Positions 18,688 to 47,584 of a DNA stretch of 64,000 bases are shown here, in pieces (positions within the stretch are counted from its first letter, which is position 1; each line of letters starts with the position of its first letter). The position numbers and the translations under genes were made by a program. The notes below the pieces were generated by a model that saw nothing but the letters and a program-made list of their open reading frames with translations, searched no databases and had not been told where the DNA came from. Where the stretch lies: assembly GCA_965240325.2 (NCBI GenBank), contig OZ251240.1:372001-436000 (forward strand), given 5' to 3'. This DNA is from Rebecca billardiae RCC1528 (taxonomy: Eukaryota; Protista; Haptophyta).

Positions 18688-19925
18688 GCGCGCTCGCGGC
18701 GCCGCGCCGCGCCAAGGGCGGGGCGCCCGCCGCCAAGCCCGAGAAGAGCGCGCGCCCGCCGGCCGAGCCGCGCCCGCCGGCCAAGCCGCGCCCGCCGGCC
18801 GAGCCGGCGCCCGAGTGCGCGGAGCACTACGTCAACTGCCGCGTGCGCAAGCCGTCGGGCGCGAAGGGCAGCATCGACGGGCACATTGTGCGCGTGCTGC
18901 CGGCGGCGCCCGCGCTCGCGGCCGCGGGCGGCGCGGGCGCGGCCGCCGCGCTGCTGCCCGCCCGGCTGCTGCTCGCGCTGGCCAGCGGGGAGCACCTCAC
19001 GATCGGGGTGGACGCAGTGCGCCCGCTGCTGCTGCCGCGCGCCGCGGCGCCCGCGCCCGGCCCGCGCACCGCGAGCGCCGCGCACACGCCCGTGCCCGGC
19101 GCCGCGCCGCCACCGGCCGCGTGCGCGCGCGCCGCGCGCGTGCGCCCCTCGCTGCTGCTCGGGCGCACGCTGGTGCGCGCCTTCGCGCCGCACGGGGACT
19201 TCCTTGGGCAGGTGTCGGGGTACGACGACGCGACGGGGTGGTTCCGCGTGCAGTACGACGCGGACGGCGACGAGGAGGACCTGCCGCTGCCCGTGCTTGA
19301 GCGCGCGCTCGGCGGGCAGCTCCGCTCAGCGGGTGCGGCCGCCCGGCTCGTCAGCCGGCGCGTGCGCAAGGCGTTCCCCGGCTACGGCGTGTTCGACGGC
19401 GTCGTGCTGGCGCACTTGGCCGAGCTGGGCGCGTTCCGCGTGCGGTACGAGGACGGGGACGACGAGGACGTGCGGATGGCCGAGCTGCGCCGGATTCTGC
19501 TGCCTCTCCGCGCGGAGGCTGGCGGCGGTGACGGCGGCGGTTCTCGCGCGCCGGGAGCTGAGCCTGACCCGGCCCGGGTCGGGCAGGGCGGCGGCGGCGG
19601 CGGCGCGGCGGCGAGCGCGGTCGTCGCCGGTGCCGCCGCGGGCAAGCGGCGGGGCGTGGGCGACGCCGGCGCGCCGAGGCAGCCCGCACGCCGCCGTGTG
19701 TCCGGCGGCGGCGCCTCCGCAGCGCCCTCGGAGCGAGAGGCCTCCTGGTGGGACCCGAGCCGGCCGGGTGGCTCTGCGGCGGGGGCGGACGCACTGCTGG
19801 CAGCACAGCCTGCGGACTCACAGCCTGGGGAGGGCGAGGGCGACGCTGGGTCCGGCGACGCCTCGGGCTCGGAGTCGGGTGCGAGCGAGGCCGAGGCGTC
19901 GCGGGCGGCCTCTGGGGCCTCGTGA
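17571..19925 (+). CDS. Prolyl-4-hydroxylase-type 2OG-Fe(II) oxygenase fused to a PHD finger and two Tudor-like domains
   Basis: EPLQLVAY, HHD, RRLATLFVYLN, GHTEFP, VRPRAGSALLWSN, AAH...KLGLNVW. PHD CARC...LICDGARCGAGWHTFCLQPPL..VPEGTWLCPAC. Two copies of (G/S)RxxxxxFxxxGxFxGxV...FRVxYxDGDxED. Confidence 0.85.
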
Positions 19926-20354
19926 CCATTCGAGCTTGCGCGGCAGCCTGGCCCCGGCCTGCATGGCGTCCCGGACGACGGTCCAAACCGTCAGAGAGTG
20001 ATGTGACTGACTGTGAACGGGCGGAGTCGGACGCCGGACGCGGGACGCCGGACACTGTCTCATGTCTGCGAGTGTGGCTGTGTGCTGACAAATAATGAGA
20101 TTCTGACCGAGCAGCGCAGCATTCTCGAGATTCGATCCATCATCGATGATCGATCTACTGCTGTGCTTTCAAATAGACAATCGTCAATCTCAGTCACCCG
20201 TGCTCTCAGAGGCAAGTCCCAATGTCTCATAATATTATCGCGTCATGCCGTGTGCCGACTGTGCGGCGCGAGCCCGGCCCCGCCAGCGCGCTGCCGGTGA
20301 AGTCACTCGCGTTCCGGCGGCCCCTGGTGCGTGGCGCTGAAGAGCTCAAAGACC

Positions 20355-20855
20355 TCAGCCAGCGAACGTCGCCCCATTCCAACCCACGTTCTCGCGCGGG
20401 ACGTCGAAGAAGTTGACGTAGATCCGGTCCTTGGGCACACCAAGCGGCTCGAGCAGCGCGGACAGCTGCGCCATCAGCTTGCCGTTGCTCTCCTTGCCGA
20501 TCGAGCCGATAGAGTAGAGCACGCCGAGCGCACACGGGGTGGGCTCGCCGCCCCAGATCAGGTCGAGCTTGTCGTTCACGCAAACGGCGACGTACGACTC
20601 CGGCTTCCCCGTCGCGGCGACGATCGCCTTGGAGCACTGCTGCATGAAGGCGACCTTCTCCGAGCCGAGGTCGATGTTGGTCGAGAGGATGAGCGAGGGG
20701 TCGCCGGGGAGAGTGCACGGGTCGACGGCGGGGGCGGGCGGGGTGGGCGCGGAGCTCATGATCGGGGTCGAGCGCATGGCCGAGGAGCCGACGCGGGAGG
20801 GCTGCATGGCGACGGCGGACGCGACGGCCGCAAGCGCGAGCACTCCGAATGACAT
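20355..20855 (-). CDS. MIF / tautomerase family protein with N-terminal targeting peptide
   Basis: PSLILSTNI, TGKPESYVAV, SIGSIG, RIYVNFFDV..ENVGWNGATF. Signal plus transit-like leader. Confidence 0.9.
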   Translation of the reverse strand: MSFGVLALAAVASAVAMQPSRVGSSAMRSTPIMSSAPTPPAPAVDPCTLPGDPSLILSTNIDLGSEKVAFMQQCSKAIVAATGKPESYVAVCVNDKLDLIWGGEPTPCALGVLYSIGSIGKESNGKLMAQLSALLEPLGVPKDRIYVNFFDVPRENVGWNGATFAG

Positions 20856-21538
20856 CGGTGATCGTCGGCCAGCCGCTCGTCTCTCGATCTACCAAAAATC
20901 TCGAACACATCTCGAACATTCGGCCCGAAATTACGACGCGGCGAAAAGCCCACTCGCACTCGCACTCTGGTTCGAGTGATCAGGTTCGACCGGCCACCGG
21001 GCGGGCCCAGGACGGCCGGGCCGGGACGCCCGGGATGGCAGTGCGGCCGATGGCGTTCAGACTTCATCTGATGATGTCTTATACTAGCATCGTCACCATC
21101 GGTCGGTTCCGATCTTATATATTTATATATATATACACCACTCGCAGCCCCGCCGCCATTAGAAGCCGTCGACATCGGCGTGGCGCCTGGCGGGTCCGCG
21201 CCCGGCCATTATGATTATTGGTCTAGGACCACCGGCACCTGCATCCCATTCCCGTTCCCGGCGTAGCTTCAGCGATGCCAGGGCGTACCTCGGCGTAGCG
21301 CCGCCACGGATAATCGGCGTCGGACTTCAGCAGCCGTCCGCACAGCGCAGTGCTGTCCCTGCTGATCAGACAGCGATGAGTTGCACCAGCCCGCAGTTGG
21401 ACAGCTTCAGGCTCAGACGTGCACGGCGTTCCCACCGCCATGGTGTGCCCTGATTGCCGCGTGGCGACACGGCTGCGGCTCGATCGAGCTGGCGCCGGCG
21501 CTGGCGACGACGCCAGCACACCATACGCGCACATGCGC

Positions 21539-22201
21539 TCACGAGCCCACGTTCGTCGCTTTGCGCATCGCCTTGAAGTCACCAATCTTGAGCGCAGGCG
21601 CAAAGTAGGCCCAGCCGCGCACGATACCGTTGGTCGTCAGCTTCAGGTCGTCCGTGGCGTCGACGGCGGCTGAGGCGACGTAGGTCTCTTTGAAGCCGCC
21701 GATGCCGAGCAGGAAGTTGCGCGTGAAGAGCAGCCTGTCGGGCCGCAGGCTCCACGAGCCCGTCCTCGCCACGAGCCCGCCCTCCCAGATGGCCTTGCCC
21801 TCCGAGTCGAAGAGGACCTGCAGCCGCTCTGACGAGCCGTCCTCCTTCTGGATGTCGATGATCCACACCGTGCGCGCGACGTCCGTGTCCTCGAGCACGG
21901 GCTCGAGCGGCTCCTCATCCTCACCAGCCGCCGCGGGCTCGCCCTCGCTCGACATGGCGAACCCGGGCCCCGCAGGCGCGTCGAGCGGCCAGTCGTCGGC
22001 GCTGCCCACCGCGGGCGGCGCCGGCGCCTCTGTGGCCTCGCGGCCGTCCGCGTCGCTGAGCATGAGCGGCGTGGCGGTCGCGCGCTGCGGTGACCGCACA
22101 TACGTCGGAGCCAGCCGGGCGAACGCCGAGCTCGCGCCCCCCGCGCCCGGCGCCAGCGCGAACACCGCGAGCGCGCCGGAGGCGAGCACCCACGCCGTCA
22201 T
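21539..22201 (-). CDS. Hypothetical protein with a bipartite (plastid-type) targeting signal
   Basis: Hydrophobic leader followed by SSAF and an Arg/Thr-rich transit-like stretch; acidic linker; beta-rich C-terminal domain. Confidence 0.6.
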   Translation of the reverse strand: MTAWVLASGALAVFALAPGAGGASSAFARLAPTYVRSPQRATATPLMLSDADGREATEAPAPPAVGSADDWPLDAPAGPGFAMSSEGEPAAAGEDEEPLEPVLEDTDVARTVWIIDIQKEDGSSERLQVLFDSEGKAIWEGGLVARTGSWSLRPDRLLFTRNFLLGIGGFKETYVASAAVDATDDLKLTTNGIVRGWAYFAPALKIGDFKAMRKATNVGS

Positions 22202-22371
22202 CGCCCCGTGTCTAATTGGTCTCGAACAAACCGAGCGCAGCGGGGTGGGAATGCCACGCGGAACCGGTTTGCGCGTGCTCGCTGTCCGGCCGCGCTGGGA
22301 CCGACGGTGGAGGCCACGAGGTCGAGCCCTTCGCGAGCGGCACGACCGTCCAAGGCTCAAAGCAGTCCAAG

Positions 22372-23511
22372 ATGGTGGACGTGAAGCGCTTTTGCGGCTG
22401 GCACGGCCTCACCCTTGCGGCGTGCTGGCTGTCGCTCGGCGCGCACGCCGCGCTGCCGCGGGCTGCAGGCGTGTCACGCGTGGCACCACGCGCTCGCACC
22501 GCCATGCTCACCCCGCGCAAGCGCGCACCGCCGCCCGAGCTCGGCCTGGGCGAGGGCGGCGCTGCGCTCTTCGACGACGAGGACGAGGACGAGGACGACG
22601 GTGATGATGAGCTGGTGTTCGATCCCGACGACGTCTTCGACCCGGCCGCGCCGCCGAGCGAGGTTGAAATATCCGCGCCCGCCCTGTCGCCTGCGGACAA
22701 GTTCGTCTCCGAGCGCGTGCCCATCGAGCTCGGCGGCGGGCGCGCGCTGAGCATCTGCAGGCCGGCCGATGACGCCGTGCTCGAGCTGCTGATGGTGGAG
22801 GCGCGCGCCGAGGCGATGGCGGACGGGGGCAAGGACTTTGACGGGGTGATGCAGCGGCTCGTGCGCCAAGCCGTTGAAGAGCGCCCGCGCGTCTGGTTCT
22901 GGTCGATGATCTGGCCCAGCTCCGTCGCGTTTGCGCGCTGGCTCAGCGAGGACGAGGACGCGCGCGCGCTGCTCGACGGCCGCGAGGTGTGCGACTTTGG
23001 CGCCGGGCTCGGGCTGGCGGGCGTGGCCGCCGCGCGTATCGGCGGGGCGGCGAGCGTGGAGCTCGTCGACGGCGAGCCGCAGGCGTGCGAGTACGCCGCG
23101 TTCAACGCCGCGCTCAACGGCGTGGGCGAGCGCGCGCGCACCGTCTGCTTTGAGTGGGACGCGCTGCCGCTGCTGCGCGCGCAGCCTGCGGATGGGGCGG
23201 CGGCGCGCGGCGGCGCGGGCGGCGCGCCGGCGCCGTGCGACGTGCTGATCGCGTGCGACGTGGTCTACGACGCGGCCGCGCCGGCGCACCTCGCGCGCTG
23301 CGCCTCCGCGCTCGTGCGCCCCGGCGGCGCCATCGTCCTCGTCGACGAGACGGCCCGTCCATACGGCAGCGAGCAGCGGCTGCAGGAGCTGCGCGCACGG
23401 CTCGAGGGCGGCGAGGCGGCGTGGCAGCTCGCGGAGCAGCAGGACGTGGCCGTCGCGTGGCAGGGCAAGGAGCACCGCGTGGCCATCACGCTGCTGCGGC
23501 GGCTGCCGTAG
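22372..23511 (+). CDS. Class I SAM-dependent protein-lysine methyltransferase (METTL21/Methyltransf_16-like)
   Basis: WSMIWPSSVAFARWL, VCDFGAGLGLAG, LVDGE, FEWD, DVLIACDVVYD. Divergent from the 22201 gene across ~170 bp. Confidence 0.85.
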   Translation: MVDVKRFCGWHGLTLAACWLSLGAHAALPRAAGVSRVAPRARTAMLTPRKRAPPPELGLGEGGAALFDDEDEDEDDGDDELVFDPDDVFDPAAPPSEVEISAPALSPADKFVSERVPIELGGGRALSICRPADDAVLELLMVEARAEAMADGGKDFDGVMQRLVRQAVEERPRVWFWSMIWPSSVAFARWLSEDEDARALLDGREVCDFGAGLGLAGVAAARIGGAASVELVDGEPQACEYAAFNAALNGVGERARTVCFEWDALPLLRAQPADGAAARGGAGGAPAPCDVLIACDVVYDAAAPAHLARCASALVRPGGAIVLVDETARPYGSEQRLQELRARLEGGEAAWQLAEQQDVAVAWQGKEHRVAITLLRRLP

Positions 23512-23879
23512 GCCGGCTGGCATGGCTCCGGCGGGCAGGCCACCCGCCAGAGCAGGCGGCGCGCAGGCCGTGACACTGGCCCACGACCGCCGCGACTCGT
23601 CTGCTGCTGATGGCGTGGCCGCCGTGGCACGACGGCGACCGTGCTGGCGCGGCGGCCATGGGCCATCACAGCAGCGCGCATAGTTGGCACCGCAGGGCGC
23701 CCCCATATATATCATCGTCGAAAGCATCCGGGTCGCCGTGAGTCGGATGATATAATATGATCAATGATGCTTCACTATCGTCGCAGCTATACGGCAGTAT
23801 ATAAGCAGAATATTGCAGCCGCGATATACGGTAGTAGTACGGCACTCGGACTGTAGCCTACGACGGCTCACTCTTGCAG

Positions 23880-24037
23880 GCGCGGGGGGCGCAGGGGGGC
23901 AGAGCCCCCCGCGCTGTGGGAGTGTGGCGGGCCCGCGCTGAGTCTTTAGGCCCGGCCGCCTAAGAAATTAATTATGGCCCGCGGTGCAGGGCGGAGCGCG
24001 CAGCGTGGAGCCCGCACCAGCGGGCCCGAACCACGTT
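23880..24037. other. Two GC-rich stem-loops at the left edge of the primase element
   Basis: GCGCGGGGGGC-GCAGGGGGGCAGA-GCCCCCCGCGC (23880-23914) and GGCCCGC GGTGC A GGGC...GCCC GCACC A GCGGGCC (~23976-24026). Confidence 0.7.
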
Positions 24038-24447
24038 TCAAAAAGATCTTTGATCAAAGAAAAAAGGGACGGGGGACGATTTTCAGGGCTGGAGGAGACC
24101 GAGTTTCGAATTTTGAGACTCCCTTACAGGTGCATCCTCGTCGGACCAAGGACCCCAGTTTCTCCCGGGTAACAATTCCTCTAACTATTACTCACCCCCG
24201 TCGCGCCCGTGAAAAGTGTTACGGGCCGAGCGTAGCAGTAACATGTAACACTCTCACGCCGGACTCACGCCCGGACTGCGGGTGTCTGACCGAGCCGCAC
24301 TCGCCGCCCGTGACTAAACGCCCTGGCTGAGCACACTGTCAGCCATCACTTTCACTTGAGACCGTCGGTGGCGTCGGTCTCGGATTCTCGCGGCCCGTTG
24401 CCGGCCAGTCCGGGTCCGGGTCCGGGGCCGGGCGGGTGGCGCTGGGC

Positions 24448-24750
24448 CCCGGGAGGAGGCCCCCTGTAACAGCTGTAACACCGTAACACGTAACAAGTCC
24501 GGCGCGGCGAGTCCGGGAGCCGACCGGTCCAGGTCCGGGGCGGGCGGGCCGCCCGGGCCGGGCCCGGGAGGAGGCCCCCTGTAACAGCTGTAACACCGTA
24601 ACACGTAACACAATGGCGCCGCTCGGCCGCGGCCCGTCGGCCCGGTGAAAAAATGGCGGCGGGGCGCGCGGCGCGCAGCGTCGCGCTCGGTGCGCTCGGC
24701 GGGGCTCGAGGAACGACTGCGGACGGGCGAGCGCGCACGGGCGCGAGCAC
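24448..24750 (+). repeat. Left arm of the ~300-bp inverted repeat around the primase gene (contains 2 GTAACA modules)
   Basis: Reverse complement of ~26295-26594 with a few mismatches and indels. Confidence 0.9.
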
Positions 24751-24842
24751 GAGTCGCGTCGCCCGCGCCCCTCCCCGAGCGACCTGCCGCCGCGTCTCGC
24801 GACGATGGCGCAGTGGCCGCTCGTCCGTGGCCGCGTGAAAAA

Positions 24843-26096
24843 ATGGCGGCGGGGCGCGCGGCGCGCAGCGTCGCGCGCCCAGGCGAGGCGTGCACGCACG
24901 AGGTTGTGTTCCTGGCAAGTGGCTCGCAGCGTACGTTCGGCGGCCGGCTGCACGTGCCGAGCAGCCGCCTGCGCGAGCTCGATGCACTCGTGGCCGCGCA
25001 GCACTTGGTGCACGGCGCGCGCGCGCCCATGGTGGTCGAGGCGCTCGGCGCGCGCGCGCGCTTCGTCGTCGATGTGGACTGCGCCTTCAGCACCGCGCCC
25101 TCCCCCTCGGACGTGGCCGCACTGCTCGTCGGCCTCTACCGCGTCGCGGAGGAGCATCTGCCCGTGCCCGTTCCCGTGGCTGGGCGCGTCGTGTACGTCT
25201 CGGCGCGCGCGCCCAGCCCCGCGACCGCCGCCGGCTCGGCGCCGGGCGTGCGCCGAGCCGGGATTCACGCGACATGGAACGACTCGGCCATCGTCTCGGC
25301 CGCTGAGGCGGCGCGCATCGCGCGCGTCCTGCTCGACTGGGCGCGCTCGCAGCCGCGGCCGCCGTGCTGGCACAAGCTCGAGATCGACTGCAGCATCTAC
25401 GGGGCGGGCCTGCGCCTGCCGTTCACGGCCAAGTCGGACGGCGGCCCGCCCTACCTGCCGGCAGCCGTCGTCGCCGCCGACGAGCACGGCGCCGTGCGCT
25501 GCGCGTGGCTCGACGCGCTGCCTGCGCAGCACGCGCTGCGGCGGCTCGCGGCGGATGGCGCGCGCTGGCTCTCTCGCGCGCGGCTGCGCACCGAGCTGGT
25601 CGAGTGGAGCGCGCCGCCGCCCGCGCCCGGCCGACCGGCTGTGCCGGCGACGAGCGCCGCCGGTCGCGATGCGGCGGCCGGCGCGCGGCGCGCGGCGCTG
25701 GTCGGCTGGCTCAACGAGCAGCTGCACGCGCACGCACGAGTCTCTGGCTCGGCCGAGCGCTGGCCGCGCATCGTGCAGGTGTTTGCTGGGAGCACGGCGC
25801 ACGGCCCGGTCGCGACGTGCTCGACCGCCAGCAGGTGGTGCGAGTGCAAGGGCGCCGAGCACGCGCGACGCACCGTCTTCTACTTCGCCAAGTCCGACGG
25901 CCTCGACCTGTGCTGCGCCGACGAGGCGTGCGTGCCAGCGCGCGGCGCCGGGTACGCGCGCGCCGTCTGCCTGCGCAGCATGCTCTTCTGCGCGGGCGGC
26001 GGCCGCACGGGCGCGCCGCCCCGCATCGCCGAGTTTGCCTCGCGCTTCCACGCCGCGTTCGCCAGCGGCCGTGCCGCGATGGGCCCGGCGCGTTGA
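24843..26096 (+). CDS. Archaeo-eukaryotic primase / PrimPol (NCLDV-herpes clade-like, A468R-type) with C-terminal UL52/PrimPol-like zinc finger, 417 aa
   Basis: GGRLHVP...MVVE; motif I RFVVDVD; motif II AGIHATW; motif III IDCSIY followed by GLRLPFTAK..PYLP; zinc finger SRWCECKGAEH..RTVFY...CCADEAC. Confidence 0.8.
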   Translation: MAAGRAARSVARPGEACTHEVVFLASGSQRTFGGRLHVPSSRLRELDALVAAQHLVHGARAPMVVEALGARARFVVDVDCAFSTAPSPSDVAALLVGLYRVAEEHLPVPVPVAGRVVYVSARAPSPATAAGSAPGVRRAGIHATWNDSAIVSAAEAARIARVLLDWARSQPRPPCWHKLEIDCSIYGAGLRLPFTAKSDGGPPYLPAAVVAADEHGAVRCAWLDALPAQHALRRLAADGARWLSRARLRTELVEWSAPPPAPGRPAVPATSAAGRDAAAGARRAALVGWLNEQLHAHARVSGSAERWPRIVQVFAGSTAHGPVATCSTASRWCECKGAEHARRTVFYFAKSDGLDLCCADEACVPARGAGYARAVCLRSMLFCAGGGRTGAPPRIAEFASRFHAAFASGRAAMGPAR

Positions 26097-26294
26097 CGAC
26101 GCGGCGGCCGTGCAGCGCGCATGCGCCCGCGCGCCGTCGCCGTCGCCGCCGCCGCCGCCCCGCCGCCGCCGCCGCCGCCGCCGCGCCCACCTCGCGCCGT
26201 CGGCCGACGGGCTCGGCAAACGAGGCGGCGTGCAAACAAGGACTCGGCGCTCGCGCCGGGGTCGGTGCAGCGCGACGCCACGCGAACCGCCGCG

Positions 26295-26594
26295 GTGCTC
26301 GCGCCCGTGCGCGCTCGCCCGTCCGCGGGCGCTCCTCGAGCCCCGCCGAGCGCACCGAGCGCGACGCTGCGCGCCGCGCGCCCCGCCGCCATTTTTTCAC
26401 CGGGCCGACGACGGGCCATGGCCGAGCGGCGCCATTGTGTTACGTGTTACGGTGTTACAGCTGTAACAGGGGGCCTCCTCCCGGGCCCGGCGGCCCGCCC
26501 GCCCCGGACCTGGACCGGTCGGCTCCCGGACTCGCCGCGCCGGACTTGTTACGTGTTACGGTGTTACAGCTGTTACAGGGGGCCTCCTCCCGGG
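26295..26594 (-). repeat. Right arm of the inverted repeat
   Basis: Reverse complement of 24448-24750. Confidence 0.9.
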
Positions 26595-27637
26595 CCCGGC
26601 GGCCCGCCCGCCCCGGCCCCGGCCCGGCCGGCTCCCGGACTCGCCGCGCCGGACTTGTTACGTCGTGTTACGGTGTTACAGCTGTCTGTTACAGGGGGCC
26701 TCCTCCCGCGGGCCCGCGGCAGCGCGGCCCGGGCCCGCCGGCAGCCCCGGACTCGGACGAGCCGGACTTGTTACGTGTTACGGTGTTACAGCTGTTACAG
26801 GGGGCCTCCTCCCGGGCCGCGAGGCCCGGGCCCGCCGGCAGCCCCGGACCCGGACGCGCCGGACTTGTTACGTGTTACAGGTGTTACAGCTGTTACAGGG
26901 GGCCGCTCCTCCCGGGCCCGGCGCGGCCGGCCCGCCGGCAGCCCCGGACTCCGGGACGAGCCGGACTTGTTACGTGTTACAGGTGTTACAGCTGTTACAG
27001 GGGGCCTCCTCCCGGGCCGCGAGGCCCGGGCCCGCCGGCAGCCCCGGACCCGGACGCGCCGGACTTGTTACGTGTTACAGGTGTTACAGCTGTTACATTA
27101 CGGGGGGCCTCCTCCCGGGCCCGGCGCGGCCGGCCCGCCGGCAGCCCCGGACTCCGGGACGAGCCGGACTTGTTACGTGTTACAGGTGTTACAGCTGTTA
27201 CAGGGGGCCTCCTCCCGGGCCGCGAGGCCCGGGCCCGCCGGCAGCCCCGGACCCGGACGCGCCGGACTTGTTACGTGTTACGGTGTTACAGCTGTTACAG
27301 GGGGCCTCCTCCCGGGCCCGGCGCGGCCGGCCCGCCGGCAGCCCCGGACTCCGGGACGAGCCGGACTTGTTACGTGTTACAGGTGTTACAGCTGTTACAG
27401 GGGGCCTCCTCCCGGGCCGCGAGGCCCGGGCCCGCCGGCAGCCCCGGACCCGGACGCGCCGGACTTGTTACGTGTTACGGTGTTACAGCTGTTACAGGGG
27501 GCCTCCTCCCGGGCCCGGCGCGGCCGGCCCGCCGGCAGCCCCGGACTCCGGGACGAGCCGGACTTGTTACGTGTTACGGTGTTACAGCTGTTACAGGGGG
27601 CCTCCTCCCGGGCCGCGAGGCCCGGGCCCGCCGGCCC
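26438..27637 (+). repeat. Tandem array of 12 ~100-bp units, each with 4x TGTTAC followed by GGGGGCCTCCTCCCGGG; alternating A/B linkers give a ~198-bp higher-order repeat
   Basis: Units start near 26438, 26547, 26656, 26769, 26866, 26968, 27066, 27171, 27269, 27367, 27466 and 27565. Confidence 0.95.
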
Positions 27638-28835
27638 AGGAGTGCCGCCGCGGACCGACCACGCCGCTGACTCAGGACGCCGACGGCGTCACGGCGGCGA
27701 TGCGGCGCGCCGCCGCGCGGCCGCCGCCGCGCGCGCGCGCCTGACGCGCGCGCTGTCGAGCCGCAGTCCCTCGCGTGCCTGCGCTGGCGGGTGACCGGGG
27801 TGTTACCATCGCTACGGCCGACAGGGCCAAAAATCCCTATAGAAAACATTTCCCCTATGAAGGTAATATGGGTAGCAGAAACTCGGGTCCATACCCCCTC
27901 GTCGAAAAAGGACGCGGCCGCCGTCTTGAATAGTGAACAGAGGAATCAACGAAACCCACGCCCAAGTGTGCCAGGCTGGGTAAATTTTGTGGGTAGACTC
28001 TCGTTCATGTGTGATAGTTTGCCTCCGCCTTGATGAATATGAACTTGGCTTCGCGGCGGTTGGTATCTAGAGTCTAAAACCCGCAAGCCTTATTGAAAAT
28101 ACCCGCGCAGCTATTCGTTGCCAGCCCATTCCATAGTCACTGACTTATACCGAGCTGGCGAGCTCAAAACCTGCCGCCGTCGCAAGCACGTGCGCAGGTT
28201 CCTTCGGGGGTGGCGAGCGAGCCGCGACGACTCTTGGTCCAAGCCTCCAAGGGGGCGCTCGATAATGGGCAGGTGCGCGTGGCGAGTGCCGAGTGGCGCC
28301 TGGAGCGCGCGTCTGCGGCGGGTCCCGACGGCCGTCAACATCGCGTTCGTGCCCGCTCACTAGTCGTCACTCCGCACGCCCCTGCCGCGCCCTGTCGATG
28401 CCTGCGCGGCCGGCCGCGCGGCCGCGCCGCGCCGCCGCCGCAGCCGCCGCCCTGTGTTCGGGCTCTCGCAAGCTCGGGGGCAGCGGCGCATGATGCCGGA
28501 CTGATCGATCTCTGAGTCTCCGACTTCACCACACGCCCCCCTTGCCATGCCTCTCCGCCAGGGTCTCCCAGAACTCTTCTTCAGAGCAGGCGCAAGTCGA
28601 ACTGGCCGCGGCCCCGGCCGGCGCCGTCGGCTCCCCGTGGCTGTCAGCTCCGCGTGGCCTGGGCGCCTGGCGTGCCCAGAGCTGGCCGTGCCTCTGCGAC
28701 GCGTGCCGAGCCTGACCGAGGTGTGTCACCCCGTGCACGCGCGGCGCGCGCAAGCACCGGTGCTGCATGGCTGCTCGCACCGTGCTCCCTGGCTCGGTCA
28801 GTCAGCTCACTAGGCCGCGTGTCGCCTGTCAGTGT

Positions 28836-29080
28836 GCACGTAGAGTCGCGCTCATGCGTCGCTCACGCCTCGCGCCCGCCTGTCGGCCGTCGCGCAGGCG
28901 CGCAGGTCGAACCCTACTGACCTGCAGATCATCTACTCCTGCGCTGCTGGCGTCGCGGCGACGACGGTCAGCGGCAGGCCCGAACGAACGGTCGAATGCG
29001 CGGTCCCACGGTGCAAGAGTCGCGCTCGTGCGTCGATCACGCCGAGTCGCATCCGCCTGTCGGCCGTCGCGCACGCGCAG
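28836..29080 (+). repeat. Imperfect ~70-bp direct repeat, two copies (~28836-28905 and ~29012-29080)
   Basis: AGAGTCGCGCTC(A/G)TGCGTCG...CCGCCTGTCGGCCGTCGCGCA occurs twice. Confidence 0.7.
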
Positions 29081-30028
29081 GGGGTCAGGTAAGGGCCGTC
29101 TGTGATGAGGGCAGCTCGGCCGACGACCGACATCCACACTCGGCGCACGCCAGCCGCCGACGCGCCCGCGCCCGGCCGGCCGGCCGGGCCGGCGGCGGCG
29201 CGGCGCTGGGCGGCGCGCCGCTGGATGGAGTCTAGACACTCTAGTTACGTACGGGACGACTGCGACGGAGGGTGCACCGCCACCGCGGGCCCCGAACTAC
29301 GTTCGTTCTACGGAAAAGGACCGCGGAACGCGGTCATATTATTTTGGGCCATATTTTGTCAGAGAAATAATAATAAATAATCTGGCATGATGATGAGTTG
29401 CATGGATGCTGCGCCGTGCACTGGCCATGAGTCTCAGTCAGTCATCATCAGGAGAAGTCGGGACGACTTGGCCTGTACAGTACTCGTAGTCGGGCCGCGC
29501 GCCGCGTCCCACGTGCACCGCACTGCGCCTTGGCGGACCACTCGACCTCGTCAGCCGCGGACGACGTCAGTCCGCCCGGTTTCTTATAGTGCATACTCAC
29601 TCACAGCGCATTGAGCATAAAGCTAGTGCTGACTATGCGTATGGCGAACCAGCCAATCGCTACAGTCTCAGTTTCTAGGCCATGCAGATCCGCAGATAGC
29701 AAGCCCGCCCAGTTTCTTAACTCGTGACGACAGCTCGCCTTATTGCCTGCGATTGGGCTCCGAAGTTGGGACCTGTTGCCTGTTGGCTGTTATAGAATAT
29801 AGATAGATGATGTCGTAAGTAAGCAGTCGCACTGACCCGAATAATAAATGTACTAATATAATAATAATAGATTATTTATTAATAATATAATAGCTATATT
29901 GCTAACGACTGATGCTGCCGCGCGCGCGCGTCGGCGTGATGGCGAGCCGTGACAAATACAATGCTGACGATGATGATGACAATCAGCACATCATATTGAC
30001 AATGATGTGATGACGAATGACGACGATG

Positions 30029-30168
<140 letters not shown>

Positions 30169-30401
30169 CTGTCGTCGTCGTCATATCGCGATCATCGTCA
30201 GTCGATCGACGAGTCGCTCAGTAGTCGCGGGAGTGCCGGAGTGCGGCCAGCGACTCGTCACGACTCCGGCGATCACGGATCAGACTCTGCTCCGTAACAG
30301 CCGGCGGGAGGATGCCGCCGGTGCTCCCGATGATGCCGCCAGCACCAAGTGACCGAGCCCACCCCGAGTCCGCGCCTCGTCGAGTCGTCGAACGCCTGCA
30401 G

Positions 30402-33338
30402 TTACTGCGCCGCCGACGCGGCCGTGGCGAGCTCGGCGCAGCGCCGCTTGTGTGCCTTCCAGTGCCGCTTCTGGCAGTCGCGGCCGCAGTAGTAGACCTG
30501 CTTGCACTTGATGCACGCGCGCAGGGACACGCCCGTCGCATGGCAGGCGGCGCACAGCTTGGGCAGCTCCGTGCGCGGCCCGTCGTCCGCGCGCGCCGCC
30601 GCGCCGCCGCCGCCGCCGCCGCCGTCGGCCGCGCGGCCCTCTGGCGCGAGCAGCTGCTCCTGCATCTGTGCAACGGCCGTGTTCACGCGCCCGTTGAACT
30701 CGGCGTACGCCTCGGCGCCGAGCTCGCGCAGGGCGTCGACGAAGTCGTCGCCCGCCGCCCACCAGTGCCGGCCGTGGTTGACGGTGTACCGCAGCGCGAG
30801 GCCGCGCGAGAAGTGCGCGCCCACGCCGGCCAGCCGCACCACCCCGTACGAATACGCGCCGCCGTGCTGCACGGTGCGGCGCGCGTCGTCTGGCAGCGGC
30901 TCCAGCCGCGCCAGGAGCGGGTACACGTGCGGGGACACGCGCACGGCGGCGCCGATCGCGCGGCGCGCGCGCGCAGAGCGCGGGCCGGAGATGCGCATGT
31001 GCAGCAGGGCGGCCACCCACGCCCACACGTCCTCCTCCTCACCCAGCGCGGGCGCCGCGCCGCCGCCCGTGCCGTCCGCGCCGGCGGCGTCGGCGGCGGC
31101 GGCGTCGGCGTCGCCGCGCCTCGCGCCGCGAGAAGCGGAGCCGCCGCCGCCCGTGCTCCCGTAGCGCGCCATCAGGGCGAGCGCGTCCTCCCAGCGCCCC
31201 GTCTCGAGCAGCACGTCGAGCAAAAAGTCGCGCGCGCGGAACGCGTCGGCCGGGTCATCCCAGAGCAGCGCCTGCGCGAGCGCGATCGCCTCGGCCACCG
31301 CCTCCGCCGTCTCCGCCTCCCACAGCGCGTTGGCAAGGCCGTACGTGTGCGCGCGCCACGCGTTGCGCACGCGCGCGGCCGAGCCGGGCGGGCCGCTCGG
31401 TGGGCGGTCGAGCCGGCAGGGGCCTTCCTCCGGGGGCGGCGGCGGCTCCACGCCCATCGGCTCGGGCTCGGGCTGCAGGCACTCCGGCCGCACCGCCACT
31501 GGCTCTGGCGGCGCCGCGCCCGCGCCGTCGGCGTCCGCGGGCAGGAAGCGGACGGTGTACCGCCCGCTGTCCTCGCTGAAGAGGATGACGCGCACGGCGC
31601 GGCCGTTGAGCTCGGCGCGCGCCGTCAGCCCGCGCACGCGCACCCGCCGCCGCAGCAGCGGGCCCATCCTCCCGAGCGCCTCCCGATGGTACTCGACCGC
31701 CTGCGCGACGGTGCGCACGCTGGCGGGGCGGACAACGCCCATCGCGCCGATGGCCCCTGGCAGGGAGACGGCGGGGCGCATGGCCGAGCGGACGGCGCAG
31801 GCGGGGTACGCGGGGCGGCACGCGACGCGCGTGGTGCCCCCCACCGCGCCGCCGTGCCCGCGCCCGGACTCGTACGGCACGGGCTCGTCGTCCACGCCCG
31901 TGCCAGCCCCGCACGGCGCGTATTCGTACGGAACAGCGTGCGGAGGCGGTGGCACCGGCCTCGAGCGCACGGCGCGGGCGAAGAAGGCGACGGACATCGC
32001 CATGGCCGCCTCGGCGAGCGCGACGTCGTCGGGCGTGAGCCGGCGGGCGGGCTCGCCGCACGGGAAGAGCACCGGGAACGTGCGCCGCTGCGGGTCGCCG
32101 CGCGCCTCGGAGACGGCGGCGCCGAGCGGCCGCGCCAGCCTCAGGATGTCCGCCTGCACGCGCTCGCCCAGCTCTGCGTCGTCTGGGCCGAAGAAGGTGA
32201 GCTCGAGGGAGGCGGCGGGGAGCGCGGGGCGCGGGCGCACGAGGAGGTGGCGCTCGAACGACGCCGCGTCGGGGAACGTGCGCAGCCCCACCGCCTCCCC
32301 GCCCTGCACGCCGAGCAGCAGCACCACCGCCTCGCGTCCGCCCGGCACGTGCGCGCACCCCAGCCCGAACGCCGCGCCGTGCTCGGCCACGCCCTCCCAC
32401 GGCCGCGCGTCGCGCATGGCCGCGGCGGTGTCGAGGAACGAGCGCGCGAGCGCGGGCTCGAGGCCCGCGACATCGGTGAGGAAGCCCCGCGCCTCGGCGC
32501 CGCCAGCACGCCCCGCGAGCGCGGCGCGCGGCGGGCGCCACGCCGAGGGGCGCGCGCTAGGCAGCTCGCGCAAGCCGAGGCCGCGGCAGGTGCGCACGAC
32601 GGCGGAGCGCAGCACGCCCACAAACGTCTCGCGCGTGAGCGCGCGGGCGGCGGGCGTCATCACCGCCTCGGCGCAGTACACCTTGCACACCACGCGGTCC
32701 ACGACGAACACCGCGCCGAAGACGTGCACGTGCTTGGGCGGCCCTCCGCCGACCATCAGCTCGCCCGAGCGCGATATCAGCTCCATCGCGTTGGCAGGCC
32801 GGCGCGCGGGGCGGTTGCGCAGGAGCGTGAGGTCCTCGGCGCCGGGCACCTCGGCGGGGTCGGTGGGGATGCTGTCGAGGTTGTCGAGGTACCCCTCGCC
32901 GTCCGCCGCGGCCGAGAGCTCCCGCATCGTCGCGTGGAAGCGGCGCGCGTCCTCATGCGTCGGGAGCACCCACACCATGTGCCACATGTCACCGATCGTG
33001 TTCACCTCGCGCGACGGCGAGTTGGTCAGGCCGCCCGCCGTCTCCCACTTGCGCTTGCCCAGCACCTCGGCGCGGCAGGCCTTCCACAGGACGAGCTCGC
33101 CCAGGTAGCACGCGCCTCGCGCGCCGAAGCGAGCGCGCAGGTCGTCCAGCGTCGGCTCGCGCGGCGTGCCGTCGGGAAAGGCCTTAGGCGAGCCGTCGTT
33201 CATGGAGATCGGGCCAGGGCGGTCGACCCAGTCGCGGCTCACCACGAGCTCGAGCTGGTTGGGGGCGCCCACGCCCGAGCCCGGGACTTTGGCGAGGTCC
33301 GCCGTCGACAGGAGCAGGTCGCGCGTCGCCACCACCAT
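30402..33338 (-). CDS. Multidomain MYND zinc-finger protein (start 33338 or 33203)
   Basis: C-terminal MYND CAAC..LRACIKCKQVYYCGRDCQKRHWKAHKRRC. SH3-like VRVRGLTARAELNGRAVRV..GRYTV. ST7/TPR-like helical region LANALWE..EAIALAQALLWDDPAD. Confidence 0.8.
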   Translation of the reverse strand: MVVATRDLLLSTADLAKVPGSGVGAPNQLELVVSRDWVDRPGPISMNDGSPKAFPDGTPREPTLDDLRARFGARGACYLGELVLWKACRAEVLGKRKWETAGGLTNSPSREVNTIGDMWHMVWVLPTHEDARRFHATMRELSAAADGEGYLDNLDSIPTDPAEVPGAEDLTLLRNRPARRPANAMELISRSGELMVGGGPPKHVHVFGAVFVVDRVVCKVYCAEAVMTPAARALTRETFVGVLRSAVVRTCRGLGLRELPSARPSAWRPPRAALAGRAGGAEARGFLTDVAGLEPALARSFLDTAAAMRDARPWEGVAEHGAAFGLGCAHVPGGREAVVLLLGVQGGEAVGLRTFPDAASFERHLLVRPRPALPAASLELTFFGPDDAELGERVQADILRLARPLGAAVSEARGDPQRRTFPVLFPCGEPARRLTPDDVALAEAAMAMSVAFFARAVRSRPVPPPPHAVPYEYAPCGAGTGVDDEPVPYESGRGHGGAVGGTTRVACRPAYPACAVRSAMRPAVSLPGAIGAMGVVRPASVRTVAQAVEYHREALGRMGPLLRRRVRVRGLTARAELNGRAVRVILFSEDSGRYTVRFLPADADGAGAAPPEPVAVRPECLQPEPEPMGVEPPPPPEEGPCRLDRPPSGPPGSAARVRNAWRAHTYGLANALWEAETAEAVAEAIALAQALLWDDPADAFRARDFLLDVLLETGRWEDALALMARYGSTGGGGSASRGARRGDADAAAADAAGADGTGGGAAPALGEEEDVWAWVAALLHMRISGPRSARARRAIGAAVRVSPHVYPLLARLEPLPDDARRTVQHGGAYSYGVVRLAGVGAHFSRGLALRYTVNHGRHWWAAGDDFVDALRELGAEAYAEFNGRVNTAVAQMQEQLLAPEGRAADGGGGGGGAAARADDGPRTELPKLCAACHATGVSLRACIKCKQVYYCGRDCQKRHWKAHKRRCAELATAASAAQ

Positions 33339-33401
33339 TCTGGAGCGCGTGGCGACCGTGATGACGACGCCCGCCGGCGCGGCGCGGGCCCGACCCACCA
33401 A

Positions 33402-34786
33402 CACTTGCCAGAGTGCACGCGACCACTTGGCGGGCCCTCGGGCGCCAACCGTTGCGGCCCATTGGCTCGTACCGCGTGGGGGGGCGCAGAGTAGACTGAT
33501 GAAGCCTCTCGCACCACCCGAGCCGACCTCGACACCTGTCACTCGCTCGCGCGCGGCCGCAGAGCCCCCCGAGCGGACTGCCGTGAGCACCCGGCCGCGG
33601 CACCCGCGCCGGCCAAGCTGGCGAGAATGGCGCTGAGGAATGGCGGCGAAGGCGCGCCAGCGTTGCGCGCACGAGCAATAGCCACGATCCGCCTGCCGCC
33701 ACCGCCGCCGCTGTCATCGTGCGCCCTGACCCGCCGCCCGAGCGGCACGCGCGGTGGGCTGGGGGGTGCCAGGCGGCCATGCTGATCAGCCGCCGCCACC
33801 ATGGCGCGCGCGCTCACGGCGCAGCACCTCCTGGAGATAGTTCCGTGGCACAGCGCCAGTGAAGATAAACACCGTCGCTTGCGGCTGCGATGCGCGCCCT
33901 GGCGGGCCGAGACTGGCAACGGCAGGAGATGCATCTGCCACACGCCACTGCTGACTGCGAAGTGAGGTAGACCGCACACACCGCAGTGTCCGCAGTCTGC
34001 GCAGAGCTGGAGCAGCCTCAAGCCTGGCCACACGAACACTCAGGACACAGGCGCTAGCGCACCAGCGCCCGTGCGCGGCAGCTTACTCAGGGACTGGCCT
34101 TCTGACATGTCTAGACTGCCAGCTATACAGTACCGCCATGTAACACACAACAAGTAGCACGCGCGGGCTGGAACTGAGGTGCCAACTCCAAGGTTTGGAA
34201 TTGGAGCCGCGTCGGGGGACGCCGCATGTCCTCGGCGCACAGCACCAGCTGCCACCTTCTGCAGTCTGCGAAGGGCTCTGAGGCCGCAACAGCTCACTGA
34301 CACACACATGGACCATGCCAAAAGTCCACAACAAGCCACACGCCACTTGAGCCGGGTCGACGCGCGTGCGCCATGGTGGCGGCGGCTGATCAGCATGGCC
34401 GCCTGGCACTCCCCAGCCCACCGCGCGTGCCGCTCGGGCGGCGGGTCAGGGCGCACGATGACAGCGGCGGCGGTGGCGGCAGGTGGATCGTGGTTATTGC
34501 TCGTGCGCGCAACGCTGGCGCGCCTTCGCCGCCATTCCTCAGCGCCATTCTCGCCAGCTTGGCCGGCGCGGGTGCCGGCCGGGTGCTCGGCAGTGCGCTC
34601 GGGGGGCTCTGCGGCCGCGCGCGAGCGAGTGACAGGTGTCGAGGTCGGCTCGGGTGGTGCGAGAGGCTTCATCAGTCTACTCTGCGCCCCCCCACGCGGT
34701 ACGAGCCAATAGGCCGCAACGGTTGGCGCCCGAGCCCGAGGGCCCGCCAAGTGGTCGCGTGCACTCTGCCGAGACTCTGGCAAGTG
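33402..34786. repeat. Foldback structure: ~410-bp inverted repeats (33402-33812 and 34362-34786) around a ~550-bp spacer
   Basis: The arms are high-identity reverse complements with small indels. No clear TSD. Confidence 0.9.
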
Positions 34787-37272: not shown

Positions 37273-37324
<52 letters not shown>

Positions 37325-37338
37325 GTCTCTGCTCTCTC

Positions 37339-37377
<39 letters not shown>

Positions 37378-44657: not shown

Positions 44658-46039
44658 GCTGTGGTGAGCAGCAGCCTGTCTTCGCCTTTATAACCGCGCG
44701 CGCGTCGCGCTCCTTCTGGCGAACCGGTGTTTACGATAGGCGGATGCAGGGGTTGCCTGGGGCCGCCAGTCGCCACGGGGGGGGGCAGGGCGGCGAGGCA
44801 GCGCCCGCCCGGCAGCACATCGCCCCCCCCGTGGACGCTGACTCAAGCCGCACCCACCCCAGCGCGGCGATCCCACGCCAGGGAGGGCGGGCGGGAGGCG
44901 GAGGAGCGCCGCTGGCTGTCCGTGAGTGTGCCGGCGCCGCCGCGGCCTGCCGCCCGGGGGCCCCGGGCCCGGGCGGGGCCGCTGTGCTCAGGCGTCGGCC
45001 GGGGCAGGGTGCGCCGGGGGGCAGTCGCGGCGGAAGCGGTCGGCTGCACGACGTGGGCTGCCCTGACCGGCCCCGAAGGTGCGCCTGTCACGCCGAGGGT
45101 CGGCCCGCCTGCAGGTACGCTCACTTTCCGCTTGGTACCCGCGCCGCAAAGGCGAGCTGCTTCCGACTCACATCTCGTCACCGTCCGGTCACTCCGGCGA
45201 TGCCGCTGCGAGCGCCGAACCCGCGTCCGGCCAGGTATACGCCCACCTAGCGGGGAGGGGCACGGACGGCGGCGGAGCAGCGACGCGGCAGTCATAACGC
45301 GATAACCACCGCGGACTGCCAAACCCACCACTCCCGTCGCGTCGGCCATCGCCCCATAACCGCGCGCGCGTCGCGCTCCTTCTGGCGAACCGGTGTTTAC
45401 GATAGGCGGATGCAGGGGTTGCCTGGGGCCGCCAGTCGCCACGGGGGGGGGCAGGGCGGCGAGGCAGCGCCCGCCCAAAGAGGCGCAGCGCCAGGCGCCA
45501 CGCCGGCGTGGCCGGCGTCGGCCGGCGCGGCCGAGGCCAGGCCCGGCCCCGACCCCCAGAGGCGCAGCGCCCTGCCCACCACCACGCCGCACGCCGCCGG
45601 TGTGAGGCCGCGGAGCGGCGGACTGGGTGCCCCCCCCCCTCCCCCCCAGCGCTCAGCCCCTGCCAGAGGTCGCCGAGAGCCCGCAGCGACCGGCGGACCA
45701 CAGGACCACTGGCGTAACCCGCCCGTCGTCGCGCGCCGGCACAGGCCAGGCGAAGCGCTGCAGGTGACCCGCAGGCCACGCCGTCCACTTGCCCGACGAA
45801 ACCGCCCAGCAGCACGCGCGCACCGCCGCCGCCGCCGCCGGCCGGCGAGAGCGCATGCGCCCGAGCCGTCGCGGAACACACCCGAGCCGACATGAGGCGC
45901 AGGTATCGACGTCGGCTTGCCGACAACGTCGTCAACCACGCGCCTGCAGACCGCACGAGCGCCCGTGAAAGCGCGCCGAAAAGGGGCGTGCGAGGTGACG
46001 CGCACGGTGCGCGAATGGTGATGGCCGTGCGGCGCACGA

Positions 46040-47025
46040 ATGACGATCGGTGCGCGCGCACGATGAGCGGTGCGCGCGCGGGCGGATCGGAGCGCGCGCA
46101 TGATAAACGGCGCATGATACTCGGCGCGCGCGCATGACGGCGCGCGCGCATGATGATCGGCGCTGGTCGGTGCGCGCGCATGATGATCGTCACGCGATGA
46201 TCGTCGCGCGCGCATGACCATGCGCGCGCGTGACGAATTCGCCGCAACGGCTCGCGCGAGAGGCACAAGGCGATTGACGATGAACGCGACCACGTTCGAG
46301 CGCTCGAGCGAAGCAGGAGGTGATGAGTGAGGAAGATGGCACAGGAATGGGAGAGGAACGCGTGGCGCGTGGCGGGAAGGGCCAGGCACGCTCGGCGTGA
46401 GGAAAGGAACGCGCGTAGAAACGGAACGGAACGGAACGCAGCGGTTCGAGCGATAGACAGGAGGTGATTGACGATGATGAGCGCGTCCGCGCTCGAGCGA
46501 CGCAGAAGGTGACGAGCGAGGAAGACCAAGGCCAGGTGAAAGCGCCGCAGGTGGCCAGCGGGCCACGTCGCTTTTCGCGCCCGAAAACGCCCAGCAGCGC
46601 GCGCGCCCCGCTGCAGTGGCAGCCGACCGGCGAGAGCTGCATCCGCCAGAGCCGCCACGCGGCGCAGGTATCAACGCCGGCCCGCCGACAACGTCGTCCC
46701 CGACACCCCGGCCACAGACACCACGTACACCCATGTAAGCGCGCCGAAAGGTGCGCGCGAGGATGGCGCACTCGGCACCCGAATGATGATGATGGTTATT
46801 GCGCGGAGCACGAATGATGATCGGCGCGCGCGGGTATCAACGCCAGCCCGCCGACGACGTCGTCCCCCACGCCCCGGCCACAGACACCACGTACGCCCAT
46901 GTAAGCGCGCCGAAAGGTGTGTGCGATGATGGCACGCTCGGCACCCGGATGATGATGCGATGGTTACGCTGAGCACGAAGTGATGATCGGCGCGCGCACA
47001 TGATGATGATCGGCGCGCGCGCATG
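46040..47025 (+). repeat. GCGCGCGCATGATGATC-type short repeats and a ~185-bp imperfect tandem duplication (~46665-46835 and ~46833-47020)
   Basis: GGTATCAACGCC(G/A)GCCCGCCGAC...GGCCACAGACACCACGTAC..CCATGTAAGCGCGCCGAAAGGTG occurs twice. Confidence 0.8.
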
Positions 47026-47091
47026 AGAAGACAGGTGCGAGTGACGCGCGGAGAATAAGATGCGCGCGGAGACGATAGGCGCGGAGGGCAT

Positions 47092-47535
47092 AGGCGCAAG
47101 TAACGCGCGGAGGAGATAGGCGCAAGTAACGCGCGGAGAAGATAGGCGCAAGTAACGCGCGGAGAAGATATAGTAGGCGCAAGTACCGCGCGGAGACAGG
47201 CGCAAGTAACGCGCGGAGAAGATAGGCGCAAGTAAACGCGCGGAGAAGATATAGTAGGCGCAAGTAACGCGCGGAGACAGGCGCAAGTAACGCGCGGAGA
47301 AGTAGATAGTATAGGCGCAAGTAACGCGCGGAGGAGGTATAGGCGCAAGTAACGCGCGGAGACAGGCGCAAGTAACGCGTGGGGAAGTAGATATAGTAGG
47401 CGCAAGTAACGCGCGGAGAAGTAGATAGGCGCAAGTGACGCGCGGAGACAGGCGCAAGTAACGCGCGGAGAAGTAGATAGTAGGCGCAAGTAACGCGCGG
47501 AGATGAGATAGGCGCAAGTGACGCGCGGAGAAGAT
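47092..47535 (+). repeat. Minisatellite: 16 copies of AGGCGCAAGTAACGCGCGGAG with short variable purine/TA-rich linkers
   Basis: Counted directly; period about 23-34 nt. Confidence 0.95.
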
Positions 47536-47584
47536 AGGGTGCGCACACGATGATCGGCGCATGATGATCGGCGCGCGCGCGAGG

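Follow-up and report, generated by a model that had tools for sequence, protein, structure and literature searches.

The window, a 64,000-nucleotide (64-kb) stretch of DNA from contig OZ251240.1 (positions 372,001–436,000, forward strand), contains one intact gene that belongs to the superfamily of archaeo-eukaryotic primases (AEP), positioned between two inverted arms that carry modules of short repeated words (iterons). A preliminary description of this DNA, made from its letters alone, had proposed that gene and iterons belong together, and the homologous modules that lie beside AEP homologues in diverged contigs support that proposal. The reading that we favour, and to which we give about even chances, is that the cassette consists of a virus-derived initiator-primase and its cognate origin-like repeats, integrated among host genes.

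The AEP gene

The window is GC-rich (71.7% G+C) and contains long open reading frames (ORFs) in all six phases, so codon-position G+C was used to pick out the real genes. The ORF at 24843–26096 is coding. It spans 417 codons with 0 stops and 0 frameshifts, and the G+C contents of its first, second and third codon positions (GC1/2/3) are 0.76/0.63/0.92; the neighbouring host genes show the same periodicity (GC3 of 0.90–0.97), and the longer ORFs that overlap the gene in other frames are devoid of it. The intronless 417-aa ORF with AEP motifs and a C-H-C-C zinc finger that had been named earlier is thus intact, and each of its elements can be placed:

24805–24876, +, AEP gene leader and start, paralogous to 24611–24686 and to the inverted copy 26363–26410
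24843–26096, +, intact AEP primase-polymerase gene, 417 aa plus stop, from translation and codon periodicity
24843–25532, AEP domain, about aa 1–230
25071–25079, motif I, DVD, aa 77–79
25260–25268, motif II, GIH, aa 140–142
25380–25424, motif III, EIDCSIY (aa 180–186) and GLRLPF (aa 189–194)
25839–25931, CHCC zinc finger, C333-x6-H340-x17-C358-x4-C363, aa 333–363

The catalytic motifs occur in order and within predicted strands in both of the structure models described below, and residues D77, D79, H142 and D182 together with the GLR of motif III are invariant across five full-length family members. The CHCC pattern, read directly in the translation, is kept in seven of nine family proteins, including P0001, P0002/P0007, P0003/P0008 and P0006/P0009. 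A Pfam search reveals no helicase domain in the 417-aa protein.

A run of six A residues directly precedes the AEP start codon, inside the leader at 24805–24876. The word formed by the A-run and the ATG is present at three places in the 64 kb, all within the cassette, and such an A-rich start context is absent from the start sites of the host genes in the window.

A rare branch of the NCLDV-herpesvirus primases

An unindexed phmmer scan of 1.84 billion protein representatives, with no length filter, reveals only six relatives of the window protein, three of which come from more than one sample:

P0001, contig L001, JGI/ENA metagenome, 41% identity to the window protein
P0002/P0007, contigs L004–L006, three SRR runs, 48% identity
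P0003/P0008, contigs L007 and L019, runs ERR14847149 and ERR14847150, 49% identity
P0004, contig L008, SRR run, 40% identity
P0005, contig L003, run ERR14847151, 34% identity
P0006/P0009, contigs L002 and L020, ENA/JGI metagenomes, 30% identity

The four consecutive runs ERR14847148–151 hold three different lineages of the AEP cassette. Relatives in the list pass the Pfam profile PF23162 (AEP_C962R; cut-off 23), P0005 with 27.8 bits and P0006/P0009 with 43.2 bits, and phmmer links these proteins to the window protein with E values of 2.4e-9 and 8.7e-5 over the whole library; the Pfam Herpes_UL52 profile matches P0006 only, and marginally (E of 0.096). The contigs of P0006/P0009 resemble genomes of nucleocytoplasmic large DNA viruses (NCLDVs), with the AEP gene located between capping-enzyme, TFIIS, NUDIX and RING genes. 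Word-indexed protein searches, in which the candidate list was swamped by low-complexity Ala/Arg/Gly sequences, yield nothing beyond P0001 and P0006, and no related loci are present in viral_contigs and metagenome_contigs when queried with the protein alignment or with P0006.

The full-length AlphaFold model is poor (predicted local distance difference test, pLDDT, of 52), and its top fold matches are UL52 of herpes simplex virus 1 (HSV-1) and PrimPol of African swine fever virus (ASFV). A model of the N-terminal domain is of medium confidence (pLDDT of 65; predicted template-modelling score, pTM, of 0.63), and in a fold search of the PDB its top 32 matches are to the Prim/Pol domain of ASFV PrimPol, followed by HSV-1 UL52. 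The ASFV matches have E values of 7.7e-5 to 5e-4 and template-modelling (TM) scores of 0.51–0.55 in both normalisations, so that the structure search bears out the AEP fold. Fold matches of the full-length model in BFVD are to C962R-like AEP proteins and to primases of Medusavirus, Pandoravirus, Feldmannia virus, Pithovirus, Clandestinovirus and alloherpesviruses. For neither model does cellular PrimPol appear in the first 50 fold matches to the PDB.

By motifs and modelled fold the window protein is a small AEP with a UL52-type finger, belonging to the NCLDV-herpesvirus clade as defined in PMC4538821. The preliminary description had likewise preferred this clade to cellular PrimPol, and the ASFV and UL52 folds, the relatives that pass PF23162 and the lack of a PrimPol match agree with it. 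The protein is a new and very rare branch of this known clade.

Inverted arms and iteron modules

The gene is enclosed by an inverted repeat in which 24402–24750 pairs with 26295–26646 (331 of 342 aligned bases identical; 97%); the repeats had been estimated at ~300 bp and are ~350 bp long. An ungapped comparison resolves them into three blocks of 118, 83 and 116 nt with 96–97% identity. The arms and their contents are as follows:

24402–24750, left arm, consisting of spacer, two iteron modules and an inner unique part with the leader/start copy 24639–24686
26295–26646, right arm, consisting of an inner unique part with the inverted leader/start copy 26363–26410 and then the first two modules
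24445–24610, opposite sense, the two left modules, with hexamers reading GTAACA on the + strand at spacings of 9, 8 and 7
26438–27635, +, right tandem array of 12 modules, 97–113 nt apart
24495–24502, +, exact AAGTCCGG box, directly following the outer left hexamer cluster
24639–24686 (+, left arm), 24829–24876 (+, real start) and 26363–26410 (−, right arm), three copies of the leader/start
26127–26187, (CCG)n microsatellite, within the 198 nt that separate the stop codon from the right arm

Each module contains four TGTTAC hexamers with spacings of 7, 8–9 and 9 nt, followed by a GC-rich spacer, and the two left and 12 right modules counted previously are recovered at 24445–24610 and 26438–27635. 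The right array has a higher-order period of 197 nt with copies up to 99% identical. A 23-mer taken from a module has 12 matches in the window and 0 in 100 shuffles, and of the 66 TGTTAC/GTAACA hexamers in the 64 kb, 56 are in the arrays, five in the near flanks and five elsewhere.

On the − strand the AAGTCCGG box also stands ahead of 11 of the 12 clusters on the right. All 12 occurrences of AAGTCCGG in the window are within modules and adjoin hexamer clusters, and outside 24300–27800 there are 0 (2.05 expected). The 9-mer GGCCCCCTG is similarly confined, with 13 of 13 occurrences in the window lying within modules. The threefold leader/start segment is ~48 nt long and contains the A6 run, the ATG and 11 codons. 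The predicted folding of the modules is no better than chance, and the 64 kb contain no second copy of the cassette and no solo arms.

Modules beside AEP homologues in other lineages

The AAGTCCGG box is present once in L004/L005, where it lies upstream of the AEP part on the strand of the gene (+), and once in L007/L019, where it lies downstream on the − strand (0.04–0.07 expected per contig in both cases), and each time it directly abuts short tandem words. The word cluster at L004:320–361 has a period of 8 and 5.2 copies, against 3.4 copies in L005, which means that the samples differ in copy number; the cluster at L019:1270–1298 has a period of 7 and then 8, with the contig ending within it. 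In L003, GGCCCCCTG is followed by four to five words of period 9–10 and then by a one-letter variant of the box; this contig starts within a 111-nt direct repeat at its edge. The orientation of the modules relative to the gene in these relatives agrees with that of the left and right arms in the window. The probability that the 8-mer occurs by chance in the two clearest lineages jointly is ~0.003, before strand and adjacency are required.

The words themselves differ by lineage, being GTAACA in the window, GTAAAG in L007/L019, GCACCA in L004/L005 and TGCAGG in L003. The most deviant word accompanies the most deviant protein, a trend that is suggestive only, since the choice of register is to some degree arbitrary for words this short. 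The recurrence of box and words in these positions shows that gene and modules have, by all appearances, been inherited together in diverged lineages, with the sequence of the words changing from one lineage to the next. The contigs of the relatives and the window have no flanking genes in common.

The module DNA pattern has no match in viral_contigs and nine single matches in metagenome contigs (39–58% GC) that are unrelated to the cassette, and the array, translated and searched as protein in Logan and NCBI, gives no match, a weak negative obtained with one frame and a length filter. Palindromic clusters of a word spaced at 9 nt, which contains TGTTAC by chance, are located at L011:5106–5238, L012:8897–8943 and L018:3790–3917 in unrelated metagenome contigs of 39–42% GC, and look like unrelated iterons or operators.

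Other short motifs are present near the relatives' genes. On the NCLDV-like contigs the 60–130 nt ahead of the AEP ATG contain three or four GACTCT hexamers and an inverted copy (L002:9860–10000; L020:380–520); GACTCT is a possible viral promoter or binding word. In L004 (462–611, 1410–1468 and 1779–1830), and also in L005, a segment of ~52 nt with a T/A run flanks the truncated AEP part: two tandem copies lie upstream, an inverted one follows just downstream and a fourth lies further downstream. The arrangement is reminiscent of the three leader copies in the window, although the segment faces the opposite way. The first bases of L005 (1–24) and L006 (1–17) resemble sequencing-adapter remnants and are not biological.

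A start site of 3′-GTCC-5′ is reported for herpes primase and PrimPol (PMC5934617). A link between this site and either the box or the module's CCCTG edge was considered and set aside; a 4-mer is expected by chance and the polarity of the box is opposite.

Integrity of the family

The copies of the gene differ in their state of preservation:

Window copy, intact, 0 stops and 0 frameshifts
L001 copy, intact, with all motifs and the finger
L003 copy, AEP domain intact in a 509-codon ORF, with CHCC absent from the called frame (divergence or one break)
L004/L005/L006 copy (one lineage, three runs), one 5′ truncation with motifs I and II absent, the retained part free of stops and frameshifts
L007/L019 copy, retained part in two frames (at least one frameshift), N-terminal half not on the contig
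L008 copy, in two frames (at least one frameshift), N-terminal part missing at the contig edge

Most of the relatives carry a truncation or a frameshift; among the six GC-rich lineages this applies to at least three. Between L004 and L005 the 750-nt AEP part differs by six substitutions (1/0/5 by codon position) and no indel, and 817 nt of flank differ by 15 substitutions and five indels. With such tiny numbers this contrast hints at some constraint on the AEP part.

A proposed initiator-primase with origin-like repeats

The cassette would be a compact unit of viral ancestry, inserted between nuclear genes of an alga-like eukaryote whose genome is very GC-rich and poor in introns. Its first part would be the single small AEP gene of the NCLDV-herpesvirus clade, with a CHCC finger of the UL52/PrimPol type and no helicase, and its second part the inverted arms, in which modules of four short direct words are located beside the AAGTCCGG box, together with the A-rich leader/start segment. 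The modules may be the site to which the primase is recruited, through its zinc finger or through a partner, and at which it begins DNA synthesis; priming by AEPs of this clade requires the zinc finger (PMC5934617). Initiator-primase and origin would then form a pair like Rep and ori of ColE2, with the host supplying everything else. The near-identical 197-nt units of the right array point to recent unequal exchange, and the asymmetry of two versus 12 modules, like the 99% identity of the units, would reflect recent expansions of this type. The family would behave as selfish or endogenised viral DNA that decays after integration, with the window holding one of the few intact copies, and the frequent decay of the relatives argues for selfish or endogenised DNA rather than for a needed host gene.

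Several observations weigh against this reading. Signs of mobility or replication are lacking in the window, where the cassette is single copy within 64 kb, has no target-site duplication and has no repeat beyond the arrays. The codon usage of the AEP gene is fully host-like (GC3 of 0.92), which suggests either that its residence is old or that it is now a host gene. The window protein itself matches only a sub-threshold DUF in Pfam, with no PF23162 match at E ≤ 1, and has no match among PDB sequences with either a single-protein or a profile query; its place in the clade rests on relatives, motifs and medium-confidence models. The homology of the modules consists of short words in short contigs, and the spacer alignment of L003 is borderline when taken alone, with 5.1% of GC-matched control segments scoring equally. 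No module is seen in the little flank that L001 and L008 provide, and no such module architecture is present on the NCLDV-like contigs, where the AEP gene itself is found.

A bolder version, possible but put forward tentatively, is that the cassette represents an undescribed type of eukaryotic selfish DNA, 'primase-only' replicons that have one NCLDV-type AEP and inverted, lineage-specific iteron arms as its cognate origin. Such replicons would sit in algal nuclear genomes and multiply either alone or as satellites of giant viruses, and the un-host-like A-rich start context that is present in both arms would fit. Eukaryotic mobile and virus-like DNA is classed by its key enzyme, whether a DDE, tyrosine or HUH recombinase, a protein-primed polymerase B or a reverse transcriptase, and to our knowledge none is built on an AEP primase-polymerase alone, although AEP initiators with their own origins are a common solution among plasmids of bacteria and archaea. 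In the literature searched, no description was found of a unit in which an AEP gene stands alone in a eukaryotic chromosome between inverted iteron arms that diverge along with it. If the reading is right, a conserved AEP with co-diverging iterons in algal chromosomes would fill a gap among eukaryotic mobile elements and would provide a concrete intermediate for the way in which PrimPol-like genes passed from giant viruses to cells. The choice of start sites by zinc-finger AEPs could then also be studied on a primase and its probable recognition site that occur together in nature.

Alternative explanations

The gene could instead be a domesticated host gene, an old giant-virus AEP that is now a lineage-specific cellular gene like PrimPol or kinetoplastid PRI1/PRI2. 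The modules would then be conserved repeats with a promoter or regulatory role, to which a host factor binds, and the downstream copy a local inverted duplication. Host-like codon usage, an intact ORF, cellular neighbours and a single copy in the window are all as expected for such a gene; cellular co-option is known for this clade (PMC4538821), and the AEP part of L004/L005 differs less (six substitutions in 750 nt, five of them at third positions) than do its flanks. But truncation or frameshift in at least three of six GC-rich lineages is unexpected for a needed host gene, the family is extremely rare, and the A-rich start context is unlike that of the host genes in the window. A regulatory role also leaves the inverted downstream module unexplained in two lineages (the window and L007/L019), and we regard domestication as rather unlikely. 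Were it correct, cells would have captured this viral primase clade independently for a third time.

Quite improbable, in our estimate, is a non-autonomous cut-and-paste transposon, in which a transposase from another locus would recognise the arms as transposon ends, with the AEP gene as cargo. An inverted repeat of ~350 bp with subterminal arrays of short words is the usual anatomy of class II ends, and the unit encodes no recombinase of its own. A captured cargo gene would, however, be expected to vary more, whereas the AEP stays with the modules across diverged lineages in which the words differ. The locus has neither a target-site duplication nor sharp termini, the 64 kb hold no second copy or solo arms, and the window encodes no transposase, only the pol gene of an unrelated long terminal repeat (LTR) retroelement 20 kb away.

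Gene and repeats could also be chance neighbours: a decaying single-gene remnant of an endogenous giant virus would happen to lie in a minisatellite that was duplicated and inverted locally, and the two would be functionally unconnected. GC-rich genomes are rich in minisatellites, another array is located at 47079–47538, and the right array is clearly a recent expansion. The box and word clusters nonetheless recur beside AEP homologues in independent contigs (chance of the 8-mer ~0.003), and both arms include a copy of the gene's own leader/start; we consider mere proximity very improbable.

An ordinary cellular PrimPol orthologue of the host is hardly credible; the two-domain plan of AEP and CHCC zinc finger is shared (PMC5934617), but PrimPol is not among the six relatives in the 1.84 billion representatives or the top 50 PDB fold matches, relatives of the window protein are often broken, and motif I is DVD and not the Asp/Glu pair described for PrimPol (PMC10778844).

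Three further candidates are rejected. The locus is not a giant endogenous viral element (GEVE), since no other viral gene is nearby: no further viral genes are found within 20 kb on either side of the AEP gene, there is no cluster of hallmark genes, and all neighbours with a family match are cellular. It is not a D5-type primase-helicase or a herpes helicase-primase, as there is no helicase domain in the protein and none in the flanks or neighbours. Nor is it a Polinton, polinton-like virus (PLV) or virophage; capsid, packaging ATPase, protease, integrase, protein-primed polymerase B and primase-helicase genes are all absent from 23.5–30.4 kb and from the neighbouring genes.

Comparison with known systems

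The C962R-like and UL52-type primases of NCLDVs and herpesviruses are the nearest named fold matches, constitute the Pfam family of the relatives and include one relative within an NCLDV-like gene array; they share with the window protein a common fold, the catalytic motifs (DxD, xxH and hD), a length of ~400 aa and the C-terminal CHCC finger. The window gene differs in standing by itself on a cellular chromosome, in its host codon usage and in the inverted iteron modules around it, which the viral contigs do not have.

ColE2 Rep is an AEP-superfamily protein that binds its own plasmid origin and makes a primer there (PMC4538821). The cassette may be analogous to a ColE2-type replicon, and loosely to pRN1 with its ORF904, in that one AEP-superfamily protein is encoded beside a specific DNA site while the host supplies the rest, and the window-type initiator gene adjoins repeats that diverge together with it (window, L003, L004/L005 and L007/L019). 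In contrast to ColE2, the window AEP belongs to another clade, is eukaryotic, nuclear and integrated, and has inverted arrays of many modules rather than one short origin; no sequence or fold match of the window protein to ColE2 Rep is seen.

Cellular PrimPol and kinetoplastid PRI1/PRI2 are members of the NCLDV-herpesvirus AEP clade (PMC4538821) and illustrate how this clade has turned cellular; they combine an AEP domain with a zinc finger that priming requires (PMC5934617). No sequence relation between them and the window protein is detectable, and the latter differs in its DVD motif (versus D-x-E), its iteron arms and the frequent decay of its relatives.

GEVEs, PLVs and virophages likewise place viral replication genes in algal and protist chromosomes, and some PLVs encode primase-type replication proteins (PMC12220804, PMC4642659). 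The window unit is much smaller (~3.2 kb versus 15–500 kb) and has no capsid, packaging ATPase, protease, integrase, polymerase B or helicase. Class II transposons with subterminal repeats also have inverted arms with arrays of short words, but the arms in the window are unequal (two versus 12 modules), there are no transposase, target duplication or sharp termini, and a replication enzyme is the constant and only gene of the unit.

Outer limits of the cassette

The preliminary description had placed the limits of the element at 23880 and 29305, which adds two flanks to the arms:

23880–24401, left flank, non-coding, with four scattered hexamers at 24169–24245
27636–29305, right flank, non-coding, with one hexamer at 27801

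These limits do not hold. The inverted repeat stops at the arrays, so 23880 and 29305 are not the ends of the element; neither flank has coding periodicity or likeness to the flanks of the relatives, and a search outside the arrays for an extension of the inverted repeat or a target-site duplication yields only low-complexity, GC-rich chance matches and no sharp termini. The GC hairpins claimed for the left edge also fail, since the fold is no better than that of shuffled sequences (z = −1.15; 30 of 200 as good). The right flank contains a local direct repeat of ~60 nt (28842–28901 and 29016–29078), and two AT-rich islands, at about 23700–23860 and 29330–30170, bracket the cassette.

Genomic context

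The AEP gene sits alone among host genes, and every neighbour with a family match is cellular. The nearest of these, and the retroelement gene mentioned above, are:

20358–20855, −, MIF homologue (family match), carrying a presequence
22216–23508, +, lysine methyltransferase gene (family match)
30405–33590, −, gene for a MYND-finger protein (family match)
2803–5709, +, pol gene of an LTR retroelement (reverse transcriptase and RNase H) in a long ORF, 20 kb from the cassette and unrelated to it

Other neighbours identified by family match encode TPR, nitronate monooxygenase (NMO), SBF transporter, MscS channel and PHD-Tudor proteins. The earlier statement that no transposase, helicase, capsid or integrase is visible nearby stands, as none is present in the neighbouring genes or flanking ORFs, and the flanking ORFs between 23.5 and 30.4 kb have no family match. 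An Rfam scan of the whole window gives zero matches.

A Logan contig from run ERR14847148 is 100% identical to window positions 19588–23227. Exact look-ups of the host proteins find only MIF on record, in this one Logan contig, and its 90% cluster has no further member. The N-terminal extension of the MIF homologue (50–60 residues) consists of a hydrophobic stretch followed by a Ser/Ala/Pro-rich stretch; it looks like a bipartite plastid-type presequence and would point to an alga with a complex plastid. The genome of the haptophyte Diacronema lutheri has a GC content of 73.25% and 45% single-exon genes (PMC8379373), and the window fits that published genome in its 71.7% GC, its many single-exon genes and its LTR elements; no feature of it points to an animal or human origin.

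AT-rich intergenic islands in the window hold microsatellites, including a perfect (AT)67 at 30032–30166, (AT)39 at 55820–55896 and (TC)49 at 37273–37377. A region of ~5.4 kb (44700–50100) has no coding periodicity, a strong purine skew and dense tandem arrays, and contains neither the box nor the hexamer of the cassette. Its arrays are:

46662–46998, 166-nt unit, two copies
47079–47538, ~26-nt unit, 17 copies
47585–47663, 8-nt unit, 10 copies
48054–48637, arrays of 47- and 78-nt units

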